Shown here: one piece after another, positions 1 to 19,597 of the stretch
How the letters are laid out: every line of letters begins with the position of its first letter
Position numbering within the stretch: the stretch's first letter is position 1
NCBI GenBank assembly: GCA_904063045.1
Contig: CAJFCJ010000005.1
Coordinates: 1,503,988 to 1,567,987 of the forward strand
Source: Dimorphilus gyrociliatus
Taxonomy: Eukaryota > Animalia > Annelida
Direction of reading: 5' to 3'
DNA: 64,000 bases
Translations under genes and position numbers: made by a program
The notes under the pieces: model-generated
The model's database searches: none
Told to the model about the DNA's origin: nothing
Seen by the model: the letters and a program-made list of their open reading frames with translations, nothing else

Positions 1-3000
1 AATAATGAAACATTTTAAACAGGTATATATCTCTGCCATCCATAAAACACTGAATGCTTTGATCTCTGCATGTAGCGTTTTTACTACAACTCTGCCAATG
101 GCCCCCGAAATATATGATACTACAATCTGACATTAGATGTTTGACAATTCTAACATCATTATCGTTTATCTGAGAGCAACTTTTCATCCTTAATCTGGCA
201 ATAAAAGAACCCAAACTTTGTGCAGGACATTCAGACGCAGAATATTTTAAAGGATAGTAAATATCCGTTGCCTCACACAGGGTTTTTAAGTTTTTTGTAG
301 TAAATATATCGGTATTATCTGTTGTTTTCCAAACCATTTTTGGCAGATTTTCGTCTGTTATATCTTTCAAAAAGCAGTCATAGTCAGTTTTATAAATGCT
401 CTTTCGAGGTCGATTTAAGGATGTATCACTATGCGGACTGGGGAAAATCAGTGTTGAATTTGGACTTTGTGTCAATTGTCCAGCAGCATTTCTTTGAGCA
501 AACAGCCTATGCTTTATATTTGTTCTCCTCGTCTCAAAACCCTGTTTAGGTAAAATAAAGGAAAATAATAGAAAAAAAATAGGTCAATATCATTAAAGAT
601 TAAGTGTATTCAACATTAAATTGAATAAAAGGTCAGAGACCCCATGATCACATGTTAGAATATAATAGGCAACAATGGATTTTTAAATCTATTCTGAGAA
701 AAATCAATTTAAGAATCTTTGATTTTCATCTGTGTTTAAATAAATCAATAACTCGAGAATATCTTTTCTAAAGAGTTCAATTAATATTAGAACGAGATTT
801 CTCGTTAAAGAACTAAGGTAATCGTTTTTTGAATAAATTTAATTACTATTATATATGCTAAAGGAAATATTTAACATAGTTACTGAATAAGAAAAAGCAT
901 TAGCAAATAAAAATTCATTAAAATATTAAATATCCATGCTTTAATGATGGAGTGTACCATTCCTCAATACTTAGTAATAATAAATATCTATAATCATTAG
1001 AAAAACAAATTCAGGTCAATTACGAATTTCTCAAACTCAATAAAGTATTTTTTCTATCACAAACGATATAAATCAATCTATACTATATATATACACAAAA
1101 AATTAGCAATTAAAATATAAATAGGCTTAGTTGTTTCATATTGACGTAAATATAAATGAGTTATAGTCATATGAGCGTACATGAAAAGTCGTTTTTTATA
1201 AAATATGAACACAATAGATGGCGTTTGGACTGCAAAAAAATCCCTTTAGATAGAGCATATAGGTCATGGCTTGGTCAATAAATGAAAATAGGGTATATTT
1301 AGAATTCGTATATACTTTAACAATAAAATTAGCTCTAGGAAATATCTTTAACGGATTAAATCAATTACAAAGAGCTAATTATTCAAAAGAAGTATTATCA
1401 AGAAAGTAAATTTTAAAAAATATAGTAAGAATACCACATGTTTTATATCGTAACTTCCACGTTAGCAGCAGGCCTTATTTGAAGGGACTCCCTATACATT
1501 CAGTGATCAAATTTTTATCGTTCAAAAAAAAACATTAAGCCTACGATCATACAATTTCAAAATTTTTCAATAGGTCCAAAAAAAATTATTAAAATGTAAT
1601 ATAGAATTTAAAATTGGTTGAATAAGTATTCTATAAGAGTAGTGCAAGGTAAATGTAGCTATTTTTATCGTTTAGATTCATTAACCTTGCTTGCCATCCA
1701 ATGTAAAAGTTATATACTGTTAGAGTAAACAAGTTATAAATAGTGTTCAGTCTTTTAACAAAAAAAAAAGCTTGATTGAGAAAAAAAAATCTGTAAATTT
1801 TATTTATTTGTAGAAAACTGTAAAAAAATTTACAGATTTTTCAAAAGTCAACAATAATTGACAAATCAATCATAACAAATAAAATGGACGTCGAATGAAC
1901 CATTTCTCTTATACAGTCGGTTTAGAACGAGGTCAATAAAGCTGAGTTTTTTTAGTGGATAGGCCTATCTTAAAGTAAACATGGTTAAAGTTTTAAGCTA
2001 CAACGTTTTTACACAAATAATCAATACTATTTTACAAACTGTAAAGAAGTTCAATTAAACTATTCTCTCTTAAAATAATAATTATTCCCCTAAAACTTTC
2101 TAATACATAATTCATTATATCTGAATAACAATAGTAAAGTATTAAAATATGAAAAGAAACTATTAAAAAACAAAAAATAGCTATTATTTAATTAAAATAA
2201 AGTTACGAAAGGGCAAATCATTAATTATACATCATTATTTAATTCGATTATTTAAGAATCGTTATGCTTTTGATAAAAACAAAAATTGTAATCTTTGGGC
2301 TACATTTGATGGTTAAATGAATCATTTTGAAAAGTTTAATCCATGTTAACTTTGTCCTACTTTTGATGGAAAGATACCTAAGCAAAACATGAAAACAATC
2401 CTGAGACGATTATGAGTGAAACAACTCGTCTACTTCTCTATAAGATATATAGCATTTTTAGATGTTTACGAGAGAACACTTTTTTTTTCATATTTGATAT
2501 TTGTGACGTAAATAATTCAAACAACTCTACCTATCAATAAATAATAGGTGCAAACCGATAGGCCTAAATACGATAGAGTGTATTGGTCCTATAAGGGACT
2601 TTGGTTAAATATTGTTTACCTGTTCTGGTATCTGTAACATCAACTTTGCTAACCGTTCGTTAAACTCTTACCTCTCTTTGAGATTTTTCTTAACCTAGTT
2701 TTAACTGTTATATCTTAATCATAAAAACCCTATTATTTTTAAAACACTATTTGCTAACTAAATTTCTAGGAGCTGTTTACTCCACATTATGCTAAACTTT
2801 GTTATGCAACTGACCTACATAGCCCGCTCGTGTTTGTCCTCATTACAACTCATCTAAATTTACCCACCAAAGGGTCGATTATGAAATGCTTAAATTATTG
2901 ACTAATACTAATGTTGACTTGATTAGTGTCCTTGATTATTTCGCAGCTGATTGGATGGTCCAAAACGCCACCTACCTAATCTAAACAAAAACAATAATAT

Positions 3001-4554
3001 ACTAGGCCTGTGTCGATTACTCAACAAAATAAAAAATTGAGGTGTTACGTAATATTTTCAACCAATAAATAAGCTTCAATTTCATTATTTCACAACTTAG
3101 ATCGAGTATTCTTTATCATAAATGATTTCCTAAGTTGGTCAAGAACAAAATTAGCACATTACATCTTTCCTAATTATGATTGACCGGAAAAAAAGATCAA
3201 GTTAAAGGAAGATAAAAACCATGTCATGTATTAACGGATGTAGCTTAATTACGTTGTTATAACAACAAAAATAAGTTAGTATCGAATGAGTGTATATGCC
3301 TAAGAAAAGTAGGTCACACGTGTCTGAACTTCTGTATTATAGGGAGTAAATATATCTATACAGAAAATAGAGATCGATTTATCAAAATCTAAGAGGATTT
3401 GACTCTTTTGCTCTTATTAAGAAAAACCTGATATAACAACTTGTAAGCTCTAATGAATAAAAATCTATTGTAATATATGAGCAATCACTTTATAAAAACA
3501 CAATTATACTCAATACTCATAATTGGTTGAACGGGGGTAATTAGACTTAATTAAGAAATATTTGAATCTTATACCCCTTTAATGGTTTTAAGTCTTCATT
3601 TCTGATTCTCAAAAAGCAATTTTCTTCTAACTACCAAGAAAGAGGCTGCTTATTTCTTTGAATATCAAGAACAAAGAGCATAGAAATAATTTCTGCTTCT
3701 GACTTAGTACCAATTACAAATCTTAATTTGAACGAATAGTCTGAAGTATATATGTCCTCAATGATTCTAGGTCAAATAGACCTTAATTGATATTATCTTA
3801 TAAAGTGGATCGCACCATATTTAGCCTTGAAAATTGTAACAGTTTCGATCATTTGTCATTCATAGCTATCGTGTAGGATCTCTTTGGACATTGCATTTGC
3901 ACGTGACCTCTGTTCTTATTTCTGTTTTCTTTTATTCAGAAGTCCATGAAGGTGCTTTGAGAATTCTGACTTTTTCGTTTTTTATGTTAAATTTTAAATA
4001 TTTGCCATTGAAATTTAGTGTGTCAATGCTTTTAATAGAAATACTGAACCCTAATCCTATATAACAAAGATAGAAATATTTGTTATAGTATTTTCCTTGC
4101 ATGTGCAAGTTAGACCTAATATTTTATTCATTCCTTTAGCAGCAAGATATTTAATATATTAGGGTAAAAATGCACAAGCTCATGTCTCAGCTCGTGTCAT
4201 AGCACAAAGGAGATAGCATATATATGTATGCTCTAAGTACAGAATCTAGTATTTTAACGAAAATTCAAGAATTCTTACCTTCCTTGGCTCTTTGAAATCA
4301 GGAAATGGAACAATATAAAAGGCAGGCAGAGATGTTAAAGTTATAAGAGCAATTATCACTATTACATTAACATATGGATATTTACAAATATAAGTCGCGT
4401 ATCTGCAAAAAAGAAAAAATACGTTTAAAACTGTATACGAAGAGATTATGAGATATCATATTTCAATGAAAATGTACTGGTATCTACTAAAAACTTATTT
4501 AATAAACCTTTCAGAAGGATTTAAATCTTTCAATTTTCTTCTGAGAGATTCCAT
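1..4554 (-). CDS. disp: Dispatched-like sterol-sensing/RND protein, 5' part (exons 4554-4508, 4402-4279, 541-<1; runs off the window)
   Basis: Not in the ORF track. The spliced translation is MESLRRKLKDLNPSER|YATYICKYPYVNVIVIIALITLTSLPAFYIVPFPDFKEPRK|GFETRRTNIKHRL...CPAQSLGSFIARLRMKSCSQINDNDV...C...C...C...LFKMFHY. It matches the DISP1 pattern (TM1-PDFSDP-GFEPRGT; C-x-S-x-SLG-x-Y/FIA-x-L-x-x-x-SC). The 541-2 frame is stop-free, and GT-AG sites are phase compatible. Confidence 0.8.
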
Positions 4555-11122: not shown

Positions 11123-11520
11123 CTTCTAAATTTATTCATATATACTTATATATTCATCTCGTTGTTTTTGTATTTTGTGCCGAGTTTTGCTTTCTTGTTT
11201 ACCCTTTTTTTTAATTAATTTACTTTATCGTTTCATGCACAAGAAATATCTTTATTCGAATAAAAAAGAATTCTTCTATTGAGTGCAAAGTTTTTTTGGT
11301 ATGGAAATAAAGTCTTACACAACCAAATTTAGATGATTTAGAATATCACAAGCACCAAACCTGTTTTTGACAAACAAACGATGGGGCCTAGACCAATCGA
11401 TCGAGGCTGGATTCCCATTCCAAACTAATATATTTCTCTCTTCTAGGCAATCTATCGGGAGGGAGCTGGTTACCAAGCTGATGAAATTTCTGCCTCTTGC
11501 CCGCATTTGACGGCCAAGTC

Positions 11521-13289
11521 ATGTGTTCGCTTGATTTGGAAGAAACGGCAAACCGACTAGGAATTGAATATTTCCTGGTATCTTACGCACCTTTAAATAC
11601 AGATGTAAGATGTTCTCTTATACCCAAACGTGCAATTCGAGAAGTGCAAAAAAACGGATGCGGAATGCCCCCTGCAATGTTCTTCAAATCCACTCCTGTA
11701 GAACCAGAGATGATAATTAAACCTGACCCAAAAAGTTTAATACAATTGCCATGGAAATCTAAGTTTGCCTGGTTAAGCAGGTAATATTATTTTTTGTACA
11801 ACTAAAATAGTTATAGTATATGATGATTCCAATTCATTATACAGTGACTTATATATGTATGGAAAACCGTTTGACCAATGTCCCAGGGCTTGTTTAAAGA
11901 GGCAGGTGGAACTCGCCAAGAGTATGGGATTTTCCATGAAATCTGGAGTAGAGCGTAATATACTACTTTGTTTATTAATTATGAAAATATCTAAAGTTTA
12001 ATTTAAATTACCTTTGATCCTTAAAGACCAATATTTTGTTGATTGATATAATCAATGTTTTTTATGCAATTTATTACCTCAATCAATTATTAATTGATTT
12101 TTATTTTTCTCTTTCTTTTCGTTCAGCTGAATTTACACTTTTAACAAAGGATGGAAAAGAATTCGCTGATAAAATTGACATGCAACAGCCCATGAGCCTT
12201 CAAGATCCACTTGCGATTATGAGACATTCCAAGTTTTTAACTGATCTATCTGATTCTATGGAAAAGATTGGGTGGAATCCATATGAAATCGACCACGAGT
12301 CATCTTGCTGTCAATACGAAATTAACTTTGATTATGTTGATTGCTTAGAAACAGCTGATAGATTTATGTTTATGAAATTCATGATTAAAGAACTAGCAGA
12401 AATTCATGGTATAAAAGCTTCGTTTATGCCTGTGCCTATACCTAGAATACTCTGCGGTAATAACAGTTGATTCAAATTTTTATAATCCGACTTTTCGTAT
12501 AACGATATTAATAATGTGTTATCTTTTATATTAGCCAATGGCTTGCATGTTAATGTTTCCCTTTGGAATAATAGCACACATACGAATGCATTTGAGGATG
12601 ATTCGGATGAGTTGGGACTATCCCAAATTGCTTATAACTTTATAGGTGGTTTAATGAAACATGTTGAGGATACATGCGCCATTTGCTGTCCAACAGTAAA
12701 TAGTTACAAGAGGTAAATGTTGGCTTTTAGAATAATTACCCTTAAACATCTATTCTTTTTCCACAGATTAAATAGAGGTGTATGGTGTCCCAACGTAATA
12801 TCTTGGGGTGGTAATAACAGGACTGTTCTATTTAGAATTCCAGCCTCTAATAGGTTAAATTCCAAGAAATAGGATGTTTGTCTAACGGTTGTCCTAATTC
12901 TTTCAGGGTCGAACACAGATTGCCTGATGCGACTGCAAATCCCTATCTAATGCAAGCGGCAATCTTGGCTTCGGGCCTGGATGGAATCATAAATAAGATT
13001 CGTAATTATTTTGCAATGAATAATAAATTAGCAAAATAACATAATAAATCATCTCGTTACAGATCCAGGGCCGAAAGCTGATTTCGATGTTCAGATGCAA
13101 TCCGAGCAATTTAAGAAAGTACCGAAAAACCTTGAAAAGGCTTTAGATAAATTGGAATCAAGTACATTCTTGAAAGATTCTCTTGGAGAACCAATTATCG
13201 ATGGTTTTATTCACCTTAAAAGAAAAGAATGGAATCTGTTCCATTCGGAAATTACACCGTGGGAAATAGATTATTATTCTAATGCTTAA
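11521..13289 (+). CDS. Bacterial-type glutamine synthetase family ligase, GlnT (rhizobial 'GS III')/GmaS gamma-glutamylmethylamide synthetase-like; 7 exons
   Basis: Exons 11521-11780, 11845-11954, 12128-12456, 12535-12712, 12767-12853, 12907-13001, 13063-13289 join in frame. Motifs: SLIQLPWK..AW, KSGVEPEF, DHE..CQYEINF, FMP.P..ANGLHVNVSLW, PTVNSYKR, SWGGNNRT, RVEHRLPDATANPYL, EWNLFHSEITPWE. Confidence 0.9.
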
Positions 13290-14325: not shown

Positions 14326-15960
14326 CTAATTTTTTTCATCGAGGTCCTTTGAAATTTCTATGGAAACTCGAATTGCACTCTCAATTGCGCCTTCTATCCA
14401 TCCGTGGAAATCCGATGTTTGTTCTCCGGCGAAGTGGATGCGACCATGAGTCTCTTGAAAACTTTTCCTGAAATGATTTGTACATTGTCCAGGTAGGCAC
14501 ATAGAAAATCCTCCTCTTGAGAACGGATCTTTTGACCATTTTTTCACCACAGCATTTTTATACAAAGACTTCACATCCATTTTAAACATATTTGATAATT
14601 GTGTAATATGGCCTTCTATGATTTGTGAATCAGACATATTTGCTAGTTCTCTGGCTTTATCGCCTTCACCTAAAGCTCCGTAGAAAACATTTCGTCCAGA
14701 ATATTTTCCAGGTACATTCATTGGTCCTGTATCCCAATCTGTAATGATATCTCCTTCTTTAACTCCAAAAGATTCCCAGAAAGGTTTTGAAAATATTTCA
14801 ACAACTCTAGTTCCCGTTTCGAAATGCATTTTGTCAATTGCTTCTCGTTTCAAAGAAGTCAATTTAGGTTGAAATTTCAATACTCGTAGCGCACCCAAAG
14901 ATGTCGCAACAACAACGTAGTCAGAACATTCCTTTTCTAATTTAGATTGACCATTGATTTTATAGTAAACACAAGCGTAATCTTTCTTCGTTGATACTTT
15001 TACTACTGTAGAATTGAACTGGATAGTATTATTCTTTAGGCTCGATGCGACAGATTTTGGGAGATTGTCAAGGCCTGAATTTACTAGTTTTGCGGGAGCA
15101 GCACCGTACGTAAACATCATAAGTACGAACTCGTACATGGAAATAGATCTCATTTCATAAAAATATGATAAATACAGAATATTTTTAGTTAGTTCATTTG
15201 AAAATTTACACTTTTTTCTACAGTAATCTTCCAACGAAAACTTATCAAAATATTCAAGAGCATCCATCCAAGTTCTTGATTCTATATCATCCATAATTTG
15301 TTCTTGAAATATTTGCATATTTTCGGCAATAGTAGAATTAGTTTCCGGTTTGTCAAAAACATAGCTAAAAGGGTTTTTTTCCCTCAAAGCAGCTTTGTAT
15401 CGCTTTATTCTTCCATTTAATGCAATTAAATTGTTATTGACGATCCTACGAAACGATGAAACTTTTATCGAAAAATTAGACATGATAGATAATGCAAATA
15501 TGTGTGTAACAGGTATTTGAAGAGCGCCAAGTTCCCCTTTCCATCCAGACGGATCCCTATACGTATGAATTCGTCCACCAACTCTATTGCTAGCCTCAAA
15601 TATTTTCACCCTTTGGCCCATTTGCTGTAACAGTTTTGCTGTAACAGTTCCTGATATTCCAGCTCCCAGTATTATAACTTTCTTTGACATATCCTTTCTT
15701 AACGGTCCTAAAAATTGAATTCAAATGTAGTTAGATCTTATTTAAGTATAGAATCTAAAAATCTCACCATCATTTAGGAAATTGTAGTATTGAAAAAAGT
15801 CATATCTTGTAGGGGGTAAAGACATTTGATTAGCCCTTTCATAATGCAACTTCGGAGGATTTTTCGGATATCTATAATTAGTGTTCGATACATGACAAAC
15901 TGTAACTAACGGTTCAAACAATAAAATCACAAATAAACAGAATTTTTTACAATTTTCCAT
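14326..15960 (-). CDS. Secreted L-amino acid oxidase-like flavin amine oxidase, copy 1 (exons 15960-15768, 15707-14326)
   Basis: Signal peptide MENCKKFCLFVILLFEPLVTVC; GAGISG FAD motif, EASNRVGGRI, KKWSKDPFSRGG, IHFAGEQT..HGWIEGAIESA; one 60-bp GT-AG intron. Confidence 0.9.
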
Positions 15961-16651: not shown

Positions 16652-17777
16652 ATGAAAATGACACTCTCCTCTACTATTTTACGATTTTTAACTATAGTCA
16701 TCCTGTTTGCTTCTACCTCTCAATGTAAATACGAATCTCGTTTATTTAAAGAAAGCTTTTATCATTTATATCTAACATTTTATTACTTTAAAGCTTTTCA
16801 AGATTGCGAAAAGGTCGAAGGAAAGGGGATAATCATTACGGGTGCTTCTAAGGGAATTGGTAGAGAAATAGCTAAACAGTTATCAAAATGTAACGTTAAT
16901 TTGATGGCGGTCGGTAGAAATGTTGAAAATTTAGAATCATTGCAAGAGTTTATGACATCTAACAATGAAAAAGGAACGTTTACAACCCTATCCATAGACG
17001 TTGCAAAGGAAGGAAACCCTAAGAAATTAGTTCAAGTTATTATATTTCTTAGCTAAAACAATCATTCACTCTCTGTGAAAATAACGACTTATTTGCAGAA
17101 GGCTCTAACACAATTCAACAAGATCGATCACGTTTTTTTCTCACATGCCCTTTTAGGAAATTATTCCCACTTTACTGGATTGGAAGAAGACTTCGATTTA
17201 ATTAGACAGATGATGGAAGTTAATTTCTATTCAGTTACTCGTTTGATCGCAGAAATTACAAAATATTCTAAAGGTTATATACCAAATTTTATAATATTTT
17301 CATCTCAACTGGGTAAGTTTACATTAAATAATCATTTGTAAAATTTCAAAAAGATGTTTACAGTTGCCGAGCCTCATCCTACGACATTCGCTTATTGTGT
17401 AAGTAAATCTGCTCTTATTGCCTTCGCCAAGACACTGCAATTTAAGCTTTATCAAAAGCAAATATCTGTAAAAATAGTTGATGTACCGGGAACTGGTATG
17501 TTTTTCTGTTTATATTATATCATATTTGCTTACAAATATAATTGTTATAATAGATACACATGGTCTCTATACAAGTCATAAAATCTTTTATCACAATTAT
17601 AATAATAAAGAACGCTCAAGTAAACTGGGGAAAGATTTCGATGAATTTTTCGAGTTGAAGGTAAAACCCCATTTGGCAGATGTGAAAGATGTTGCTGAAG
17701 ACATAATCTTATCAGCATTAGGCAATGAAGAACATGTTGACCTAGTGGAGAAGCATAAGCGTCATTCTGAATTATAG
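16652..17777 (+). CDS. Classical short-chain dehydrogenase/reductase with N-terminal signal/anchor (11beta-HSD1-like), about 5 exons
   Basis: TGASKGIG cofactor motif, SS, YCVSK catalytic motif; hydrophobic N-terminus; small GT-AG introns link the ORF-track pieces. Confidence 0.85.
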
Positions 17778-17903: not shown

Positions 17904-19597
17904 CTAGTCAGTTCTTTTCTGTATTTCTAGAGCCACCCGTATTCCACTTTCGACAGCACCTTCCACCCAAGCGTGACTATCTGAAGTATGTTCCCCGGCA
18001 AAGTGTATTCTACCAGAAGATTTTTTCAAATTCTTGTTAAAATCATTAGAACATTGTTTGGGAAGGCAAAGAGAGAATCCCCCTAAACTAAAAGGATCAT
18101 TCAGCCATTTATAAACTACTCCACTATCAAACACAGTTTTTACTTTCTTTCTGAACAGTGTTGATAACTTATTTAAATGATATTCTATCAAGTCTAATTC
18201 CGATAAACCATTCAGCAAATGTGTTGTCCGACCTTCACCAACCCCACCATAAATTAGAGATCTTTCCACTTGTCTTCCAGGAATATTTATAGACCCTGTA
18301 TGCCAATCAGTTGTGATATCACCTTGATAAATACCTTCAGATTCCCAAAAAGGCGTTTTGAATTTTTCAACAATTCTAGTTGCCGATTCAAAGTTCATAT
18401 TGTTTATTGCCCTTTGTTTCTTTACATCAAGTTTTGGCTTAAAGTTGATTATCTTTAAGGCAGCTGTTTAAAAGGAATTTTCAAATGAATTAGGTATGTA
18501 ATTTTTTTCTGTAACAGATATGAATTTGTCACCTATTGACGTTGCTACAATAACATACTCTGCACATTCTGTTTCTATTTCTGTACTTTTGTTTATTGAG
18601 TAATGCACGCATGAATATGTTTTACGATCGCTTATTCTTTGAACCTTTGCCTTAAATAGAATAGTATTATTGGCAAAATCTTCCGATATCTTTCTAGGAA
18701 GGTTATCCAAACCATCCTTAACAACTTGCGGATATTCAATATTAAATGAGAACATCATTCTAATGAGTTCGTACATGCTCACATAACTTAAGCCTTCAAA
18801 ATTCATGCAAAATAATATTTGTTGAATAGCTGCTTCTGAAAAGTTGCAACAATTTTCTAAATATTCTTTAACTGAAAAACTATCCATATAAGTCATAGCC
18901 TTCTTCCAATCCAACTTCTCTAAGTCATCTAAAATAGCTTCTTCATACATTTGAATCAATTCAGACACAGTATACCTGCTCTCTTCCTTTGTAAAATCCA
19001 ATTTAAATGGATTTTTTTTCAAGCTAAATATACTCTCTCGTAAACGGATCCCATTCATAAAAAGAAAATTTCGACTACCAGTCCGTTGGAATGGTACGAT
19101 ATTTAATGAATAATTTCTTATTAAAGATAGTACTAATTTATGACAATCTAGAATTTGAATAGCTCCTAACTCCCCCACCCAACCTGACGGATGTCTAAAA
19201 GTTTTAATACGGCCGCCAACTTTATCACTAGCTTCAATAATCTTAATGTTATGACCCATTTGTTTTAGCAGCCTACCCGCTGTTAATCCAGACATTCCCG
19301 CACCAACAATGATAACTTTTTTTGACGCTTTATTCCTCATTGGACCTAAAAAATAAGTCCTTAAATGCACATTTATATTAGAAAATACAATAGAACTATA
19401 CCATGATTTAGTATTTCTAAGTATTTTTCGTAATTGAACCTCTTAGGTGGGGGTGCTATCCGTTGCATTCTTTGATGATGCGCTTCAGTTTGTTCATTCT
19501 GTAACGATCTTAAACGTTTCTCCCAATGTTGACAAATAATTCTGGAAAAAGTTAAAAAAAAGAATGCAGAAAACTCTAAACCACTGCAAATGTTCAT
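17904..19597 (-). CDS. Secreted L-amino acid oxidase-like flavin amine oxidase, copy 2 (3 exons; introns near 19405-19351 and 18532-18464)
   Basis: GAGMSG, EASDKVGGRI, KWLNDPFSLGG, IHFAGEHT..HAWVEGAVESG; collinear paralog of copy 1; putative signal peptide MNICSGLEFSAFFFLTFS. Confidence 0.9.

Follow-up and report, generated by a model that had tools for sequence, protein, structure and literature searches.

An annelid gene of the GlnT/GmaS lineage: a transcribed, predicted gamma-glutamyl ligase for an amine other than ammonia

Glutamylation of organic amines by glutamine synthetase (GS)-like enzymes is known from bacterial catabolism, and our literature search found no paper characterising such an enzyme from an animal. 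The closest described systems are the GmaS enzymes of Rhodovulum sp. 12E13 (RhGmaS; PDB 7cql-7cqx) and Methylovorus mays (PDB 9qur), which we used as comparators together with rhizobial GlnT ('GSIII') and the NCBIfam model of the GlnT/GmaS family, TIGR03105 ('type III glutamate--ammonia ligase'). RhGmaS binds three Mg2+ ions, and its Glu186 and Asp177 take over catalysis from the flap glutamate of GS (PMC7948447). Its kcat is the same with each of four substrates, whose Km values are 27 µM (methylamine), 58 µM (ethylamine), 1.8 mM (propylamine) and 8.7 mM (NH4Cl); the Km for methylamine is 300-fold lower than that for NH4+. Here we describe a gene in a 64,000-nucleotide stretch of the genome of the annelid Dimorphilus gyrociliatus (contig CAJFCJ010000005.1, positions 1,503,988 to 1,567,987; the whole stretch is called the window, and its own numbering is used below). 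The gene is a new, uncharacterised animal variant of this known bacterial kind of enzyme. It is best explained as a functional, transcribed annelid member of the GlnT/GmaS lineage, and we estimate a probability of roughly 65% that the predicted gamma-glutamyl ligase prefers an amine other than ammonia.

The gene, whose exons were read by hand, lies on the forward strand and runs from an ATG at 11521 to a TAA stop at 13287-13289, comprising about 428 codons in seven exons. The six GT..AG introns are 64, 172, 78, 54, 53 and 61 nt long. A public contig of 1690 nt, spanning 11446 to past 13400, has all six introns removed at the modelled junctions with zero mismatches. Because of this match, we conclude that the gene is transcribed and spliced as modelled. 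The contig comes from the sole public run that contains the stretch (X1, 2017), for which the library type is not on record. Exon 1 carries no signal or transit extension. Exon 4 ends at 12712 with ...AGT TAC AAG AG, and the codon split between exons 4 and 5 (AG/A) encodes Arg. Exon 5 reads LNRGVWCPNVISWGGNNRTVLFRIPASN from 12767, with its final AG at 12853. This exon is exactly the interval singled out in a preliminary description of the DNA; the peptide quoted there crosses the exon 4/5 junction, with SYK supplied by the end of exon 4 and Arg by the split codon. The exons and the codons on which the argument turns, all on the + strand, are as follows.

11521..11780 (+): exon 1, with the start codon and the N-terminal beta-grasp domain (7cql residues 3-84, E = 1.3e-14; TIGR03105 positions 2-82; splice junction)
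11614..11616 (+): codon for Ser where RhGmaS has Lys30', an amine-pocket residue from the neighbouring subunit (alignment, column table)
11668..11670 (+): codon for Pro where RhGmaS has Ala48'; this is the Asp50'/Asp53' position of GS (alignment; equivalence from PMC7948447)
11845..11954 (+): exon 2, whose last full codon is the equivalent of RhGmaS Glu122, a metal/ATP residue (junctions, alignment)
12127..12456 (+): exon 3, the core of the catalytic domain, with the equivalents of Glu124, Tyr174, Asp177, Glu179, Glu186, Asn188 and Tyr191
12201..12203 (+): Gln codon at the position of Tyr147, an invariant pocket residue in bacterial GmaS/GlnT (alignment)
12285..12287 (+): Glu codon at the position of Gln175, invariant in bacterial GmaS/GlnT (alignment)
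12291..12293 (+): Asp codon equivalent to RhGmaS Asp177, the proposed amine-deprotonating base (alignment)
12318..12320 (+): Glu codon equivalent to RhGmaS Glu186, a metal ligand and the proposed base for the tetrahedral intermediate, the role of the flap Glu in GS
12535..12712 (+): exon 4, from the NGLHVNVSLW motif through NSYK (alignment, junction)
12767..12853 (+): exon 5, encoding the Trp-bearing flap or gate loop and the motif NNRT...FRIP, in which the equivalents of Arg312 and Arg317 lie
12783..12785 (+): TGG, encoding the Trp that stands where GS has its flap Glu (Trp300 in RhGmaS; alignment)
12907..13001 (+): exon 6, with VEHRLPD and the equivalents of Glu325 and Arg327 (alignment, junction)
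13063..13289 (+): exon 7, the C-terminal helices and the stop codon TAA at 13287-13289; the 3' untranslated region (UTR) extends beyond 13400

The seven exons are colinear with positions 2-434 of the 435 positions of TIGR03105, which is the best or near-best NCBIfam model for every exon. Summed over the exons, TIGR03105 scores about 354 bits (101 of them from exon 3), compared with about 180 for GlnA (TIGR00653) and about 144 for gamma-glutamylputrescine synthetase. Four of the seven exons have a GlnA match, and exon 6 is the one exon on which GlnA does not score below TIGR03105. The Pfam domain Gln-synt_C (PF00120) matches exons 2-7, not exon 1. No solved structure matches exons 1, 3, 4, 5 and 6 better than those of the two GmaS enzymes; for exon 3 the E values are 2.2e-23 (7cql) and 7e-19 (9qur), against 2e-9 for the best true GS. 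We also examined the AlphaFold model of P0271, the closest full-length homologue (62% identical over the window's exons), as a stand-in for the protein of the window. This model, with a predicted local distance difference test score (pLDDT) of 90.8, superposes on RhGmaS with template modelling (TM) scores of 0.90/0.95 and a root-mean-square deviation of 1.4-1.6 Å. Archaeal and Gram-positive GS follow behind RhGmaS (TM about 0.84/0.87), and the naphthylamine ligase NpaA1 is well behind GmaS (TM 0.82/0.77, 26% identity). The ten nearest ESM-Atlas clusters, found by language-model features, are all bacterial type III ligases.

The preliminary description had compared the gene with PuuA as well as GmaS, and the first half of that comparison finds no support. 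Exons 1, 2 and 5 have no match to the PuuA model (NF045547) at E<=0.01, and the summed score of about 144 bits lies far below the model's cutoff of 650. PuuA, AtdA1/NpaA1, IpuC and GlnA3/GlnA4 are glutamyl organic-amide synthetases that carry out ATP-dependent gamma-glutamylation of organic amines. The gene of the window resembles them in having lost the flap Glu and Asp50' and in having a remodelled amine pocket, but belongs to a different clade from the PuuA/NpaA1 group. With GmaS/GlnT it shares a length of about 430 residues, the combination of beta-grasp and Gln-synt_C domains, the flap Trp, the lack of Asp50', and the catalytic Asp177/Glu186 with their ligands; its exons are 42-45% identical to GmaS. 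Type I GS (GlnA of, for example, B. subtilis, 4lni, and S. typhimurium, 1f52) has in common with it the fold, a subunit of the dodecamer type, metal-binding glutamates, the motifs NSYKR and RIP, and a mechanism of two steps through an acyl phosphate. Unlike GlnA, it has Trp for the flap Glu, Pro for Asp50', and Asp-His-Glu for the His-His-Glu motif.

The substitution at the flap was the starting point of the preliminary description, which read Trp at 12783-12785 in place of the catalytic glutamate, and this reading is borne out. The Trp of exon 5 aligns, ungapped, with the Trp of 7cql (RhGmaS Trp300, ATWSPNTITYGGNNRT; in a longer stretch, ...ATWSPNTITYGGNNRTHMVRIP...) and with that of 9qur (GATWAPAYIAYGNNNRS). 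Published RhGmaS numbering is the 7cql chain index minus 20, as checked on Arg312 and Arg317. In superposed structures, the loop Lys287-Ile305 of RhGmaS is the counterpart of the Glu flap, and Trp300 that of the flap Glu304 of B. subtilis GS (PMC7948447). The structural equivalence used here combines this published superposition with the sequence alignment. The Trp column (W326 of the first row) is invariant in all 36 aligned annelid and bacterial family members, so the match is judged real rather than due to chance. The gene is of the GmaS/GlnT type and not a canonical type I GS, as had been proposed, the Asp50' equivalent also being absent (Pro). The family members that share the Trp include some whose annotation is 'type III glutamate--ammonia ligase'. 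Being common to the whole family, the Trp does not on its own set the gene of the window apart: judged by the alignment, it marks the GlnT/GmaS family and not the substrate, and it is the pocket changes that mark the annelid clade. The earlier reading of the gene as one for a probable gamma-glutamyl-amine ligase, and not for an ammonia-using GS, is supported, but this support does not extend to methylamine in particular.

We then compared the active site with that of RhGmaS, taking residue roles from the structure paper (PMC7948447) and the residues of the window from the sequence alignment and a column table. Sixteen residues at metal, ATP, glutamate and catalytic positions are kept, Trp300 included. 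They comprise the Mg2+ ligands Glu122, Glu124, Glu179, Glu186, His235 and Glu325; the glutamate binders Arg288 and Arg327; the ATP binders Tyr174, Asn188, Tyr191, Ser239, Arg312 and Arg317; and the proposed catalytic acids Asp177 and Glu186. In exon 4, the His235 and Ser239 equivalents are kept and His237 is replaced by Asn; the codon split with exon 5 provides the Arg288 equivalent. At the two positions that handle ammonium in GS, namely the flap Glu (Glu327 in E. coli, Glu304 in B. subtilis) and Asp50', the gene has Trp and Pro. At the second of these, RhGmaS has Ala48', so that the change is Ala48' to Pro and the ammonium-binding Asp is absent. The apparatus that makes gamma-glutamyl phosphate is intact by this comparison, and the gene, like GmaS, lacks the residues with which GS handles ammonium.

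These results bear on whether the gene encodes a low-affinity, ammonia-using 'GSIII/GlnT' glutamine synthetase that serves ammonia detoxification, as was suggested in the Riftia genome paper (PMC8789280), where a role in mitigating ammonia toxicity is proposed for the annelid genes. The annotation of the family is 'type III glutamate--ammonia ligase', RhGmaS reaches full kcat with NH4Cl, and the Gln175 to Glu change described below adds negative charge to the pocket. Against this, the gene lacks equivalents of the flap Glu and Asp50', the residues described as needed by GS to bind ammonium and remove its proton; the Km of RhGmaS, the solved family member, is 300-fold worse for NH4+ than for methylamine; and GS-like enzymes without these residues are reported not to use ammonium (PMC11335346). 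Since Asp50' and the flap Glu are absent, ammonia is unlikely as the preferred substrate, and we regard this explanation as distinctly unlikely. The GmaS architecture would disfavour ammonia without excluding its use.

The positions that line the methylamine pocket of RhGmaS behave differently from the catalytic ones. Three of the seven residues differ in the gene of the window: Tyr147 is replaced by Gln, Gln175 by Glu and Lys30' by Ser. In 25 typical bacterial rows, Lys30', Tyr147, Gln175, Asp177, Trp189, His237 and Trp300 are invariant, and mutagenesis showed that Tyr147, Gln175 and Lys30' are needed for RhGmaS activity (PMC7948447). The combination Ser/Gln/Glu at 30'/147/175 is found in the gene of the window, its paralog, the Capitella protein, a protein of the siboglinid cluster and two unnamed relatives; Helobdella has Cys/His/Gln. 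Position 30' is missing in three N-terminally truncated sequences. In NpaA1, the pocket is enlarged for a bulky amine by a Val that replaces a Tyr which GS conserves (PMC11335346), and we infer that RhGmaS Tyr147 corresponds to Tyr179 of E. coli GS and to the Val201 position of NpaA1. The three changes would make the annelid pocket roomier and more acidic than the bacterial one.

One explanation that this comparison addresses is that the gene is a functional GmaS ortholog for which methylamine or ethylamine is the physiological substrate, trapping methylamine released by the breakdown of trimethylamine N-oxide and trimethylamine. The family placement and the conserved catalytic residues agree with it, as do the nearest bacterial relatives: these are marine alphaproteobacteria, in which GmaS is used on methylamine, and the animal itself is marine. 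However, Tyr147, Gln175 and Lys30', invariant in bacteria and essential in RhGmaS, are all replaced in the gene of the window and in its closest annelid relatives. Furthermore, no downstream genes of the N-methylglutamate pathway were seen in the 64-kb window, to which this search was limited, and the gene differs from GmaS in having none adjacent to it. We consider methylamine or ethylamine a somewhat unlikely preferred substrate. The preliminary description had envisaged methylamine conjugation or theanine-like products; nothing points specifically to either, and three of the seven methylamine-pocket residues are replaced in the annelid clade.

A preference for some other non-ammonia amine is plausible, and we favour it tentatively. 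Because a Tyr ring and a Lys charge are lost and a carboxylate is gained in the pocket, the preferred amine is more likely to exceed methylamine in size or cationic character, as a biogenic monoamine, a diamine or an amino alcohol would, than to be methylamine itself. By homology with RhGmaS, the annelid ligase would use ATP to phosphorylate glutamate at its gamma-carboxylate, after which a primary amine would enter the negatively charged pocket at the subunit interface and be deprotonated by the Asp177 equivalent. The amine would attack gamma-glutamyl phosphate, and the Glu186 equivalent would deprotonate the tetrahedral intermediate. The Trp loop of exon 5 would serve only to gate the site by closing over it, not as a catalytic base like the flap Glu of GS. 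The product would be a gamma-glutamyl amide, made for inactivation, detoxification or nitrogen salvage.

The distribution of close relatives bears on the origin of the gene. An exhaustive search with exon 3 returned few close relatives, and all the named ones are annelid: Capitella teleta (ELU01167.1), Owenia fusiformis (CAH1776848.1), Helobdella robusta (HELRODRAFT_190105) and D. gyrociliatus itself (DgyrCDS8096). Relatives from Lamellibrachia satsuma and Ridgeia piscesae were reached through a 90% cluster; the siboglinid protein KAI0222005.1 (Lamellibrachia) shares a 90% cluster with P0272, a member of the annelid clade. Next nearest are marine alphaproteobacterial proteins, for example from a metagenome-assembled genome (MAG) of Puniceispirillales; their identity is 45-47% with the Dimorphilus paralog and 42-45% with the exons of the window. 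In a maximum-likelihood tree (44 rows, LG+C20), the annelid rows form one group (support 96/81*), to which exon 3 and the paralog P0156 belong. Its sister is a set of 31 bacterial GlnT/GmaS rows, and more divergent family members lie outside both, with the annelid clade branching inside the bacterial family. The root is a midpoint root only, and Owenia and P0004 are long branches. The tree is compatible with one ancient acquisition, or a retention, in the annelid stem, and it agrees with the remark in the Riftia genome paper that annelid genes are the only ones near the prokaryotic group I GS; there, expansions in tubeworms were described and the genes were called lengsins (PMC8789280). The gene differs from bacterial GmaS/GlnT in being eukaryotic, with six introns; in the length of the annelid stem branch; and in its pocket, with Gln, Glu and Ser for Tyr147, Gln175 and Lys30', and Phe and Asn for Trp189 and His237.

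DgyrCDS8096 (P0156) was considered as the product of the gene and rejected: with 71% identity over the exons and the same distance to the ortholog described below, it is a paralog. An exact search for its locus gave no match. Its public model has 338 residues and starts at the position of exon 2; it probably lacks its N-terminal beta-grasp exon.

The identity of 45-47% between the paralog and marine alphaproteobacterial proteins could raise the suspicion of bacterial contamination or misassembly. The six GT..AG spliceosomal introns, removed in the public transcript contig, refute this, and several observations agree: the same intron positions occur in the genomic contig of a second species, the GC content of the gene is 31%, similar to the rest of the window, and homologues lie on large scaffolds of at least six annelid genomes. 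The probability of contamination is vanishingly small.

The second species is represented by a 4.2-kb genomic contig from another sample (Logan SRR23372231, positions 1827-3590; L001), presumably from a related dinophilid. It carries the ortholog of the gene, with the same seven exons and six intron positions, and the DNA is 77% identical across exons and introns. Protein identity is 78-97% per exon and highest in exons 5 (93%) and 6 (97%), which encode active-site loops. The residues at all audited positions are identical. Summed over the exons, the Nei-Gojobori method gives a nonsynonymous rate (dN) of 0.075, a synonymous rate (dS) of about 1.0 and a dN/dS of 0.074. The ligase gene is under strong purifying selection.

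Vertebrate lengsin (LGSN), another class-I-like GS protein in an animal, is regarded as non-catalytic or re-purposed. The identity of the gene to bacterial GlnT/GmaS is far above that expected for lengsin, and the bacterial type III ligases in all the nearest ESM-Atlas clusters are indirect evidence on the question of orthology with it. The annelid gene could likewise be a non-catalytic or re-purposed pseudoenzyme. Two members of the clade have lost catalytic residues: in P0004, a Logan transcript, Asp177 is replaced by Phe, Arg312 by Lys and Arg317 by Cys, and in the Owenia fusiformis protein CAH1776848.1 (P0042), Asp177 is replaced by Val. Judged by these substitutions, both may be pseudoenzymes or have altered chemistry. 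In the gene of the window, by contrast, all 16 checked residues are kept, dN/dS is 0.07, and exon conservation peaks at the active-site loops. A pseudoenzyme is very unlikely here.

Several points weigh against the proposal that the gene encodes a ligase preferring a non-ammonia amine, or narrow what it can mean. The predicted function of the annelid clade rests on homology, and the exon-wise TIGR03105 sum, with exons scored separately, stays under the equivalog cutoff of 469.6 bits. Bacterial proteins that bear the name 'type III glutamate--ammonia ligase' likewise have the Trp and lack Asp50'. RhGmaS turns over NH4+ at full kcat at millimolar levels, and ammonia use is possible where tissue ammonia is high. 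Three further changes, Trp189 to Phe, His237 to Asn and Gly231 to Ala (the last aligned by hand), carry no assigned effect. A general role in monoamine conjugation is also disfavoured, other lophotrochozoans being reportedly without the gene group. Molluscs and arthropods also make gamma-glutamyl amines. Both are reported to lack the annelid gene group (PMC8789280), and the gene is therefore not the general gamma-glutamyl-amine enzyme of invertebrates. Finally, the pocket argument depends on sequence alignment with a single crystal structure, and the amine was not observed in that structure (PMC7948447).

Within annelids, a gamma-glutamyl amine has been named. A passage of PMC7954447, citing Sloley 1994, gives gamma-glutamyl-serotonin as a known annelid metabolite. 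Gamma-glutamyl-amine chemistry is therefore not new to animals, and the statement in the preliminary description that the activity had not been described for animals was mistaken. Our literature search found no paper on annelid GmaS-type genes, on a cloned animal gamma-glutamyl-amine synthetase or on the gene behind gamma-glutamyl-serotonin. The annelid clade might be the ATP-dependent gamma-glutamyl-amine synthetase of worms, making gamma-glutamyl-serotonin and related conjugates; we regard this as improbable, a candidate role only. If true, it would mean that annelids inactivate biogenic amines with an enzyme taken over from the methylamine pathway of a marine bacterium and retuned at Tyr147, Gln175 and Lys30'.

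What the gene offers is an intact, expressed and constrained animal member of GmaS/GlnT, in a group that extends through annelids from Owenia to leeches and tubeworms. It provides a candidate, with defined pocket residues, for asking what the 'prokaryote-like' GS genes of annelids do, and a candidate for the enzyme behind gamma-glutamyl amine conjugation in worms. The retuning of a bacterial enzyme, probably acquired horizontally, in an animal lineage can be studied here as well.

Downstream of the ligase gene, the window contains three genes of other families. An intronless open reading frame of 454 codons (14326-15690, - strand) encodes a protein of the animal L-amino-acid oxidase (LAAO) type (Pfam PF01593, 5.9e-55; best PDB match the tetrapod LAAO ancestor, 5.6e-64). 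The alignment begins at LAAO residue 35, and a signal peptide is seemingly absent; the lack of introns is unusual in a genome full of short ones. A short-chain dehydrogenase gene with a signal-like N-terminus (16652-17777, + strand) lies between this oxidase and a second, intron-containing LAAO-type gene (about 17904-19597, - strand). The two oxidases, on either side of the dehydrogenase, resemble tandem paralogs that have diverged. A Puu-like cluster for amine metabolism was considered and found no support, the oxidase at 14326-15690 being of the animal LAAO type and not a bacterial amine or gamma-glutamyl-amine oxidase. Nothing ties the oxidases or the dehydrogenase mechanistically to the ligase.

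The homologue searches also returned sequences from outside the annelids. A transcript listed in EukProt under the rhizarian amoeba Paulinella chromatophora (P0012, 531 residues) is of the GmaS/GlnT type and carries the pocket signature of the bacterial enzymes in full; a separate transfer, or contamination of the transcriptome by bacteria, could explain it. In a protein of 4424 residues from a Candidatus Auribacterota MAG (MDX9701877.1; P0003/P0151), six stretches match the GS catalytic exon, and it is apparently a giant protein with repeated GS-like domains. P0086, with 2757 residues, resembles it.

Upstream of the ligase start codon, the transcript carries two further features.

11446..11520 (+): 5' UTR as far as the limit of the public contig, whose matching piece starts at 11446
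11481..11510 (+): upstream open reading frame of nine codons within the 5' UTR, read from the sequence (ATG at 11481, TGA at 11508-11510)

The upstream frame ends 11 nt ahead of the main ATG of the ligase transcript.

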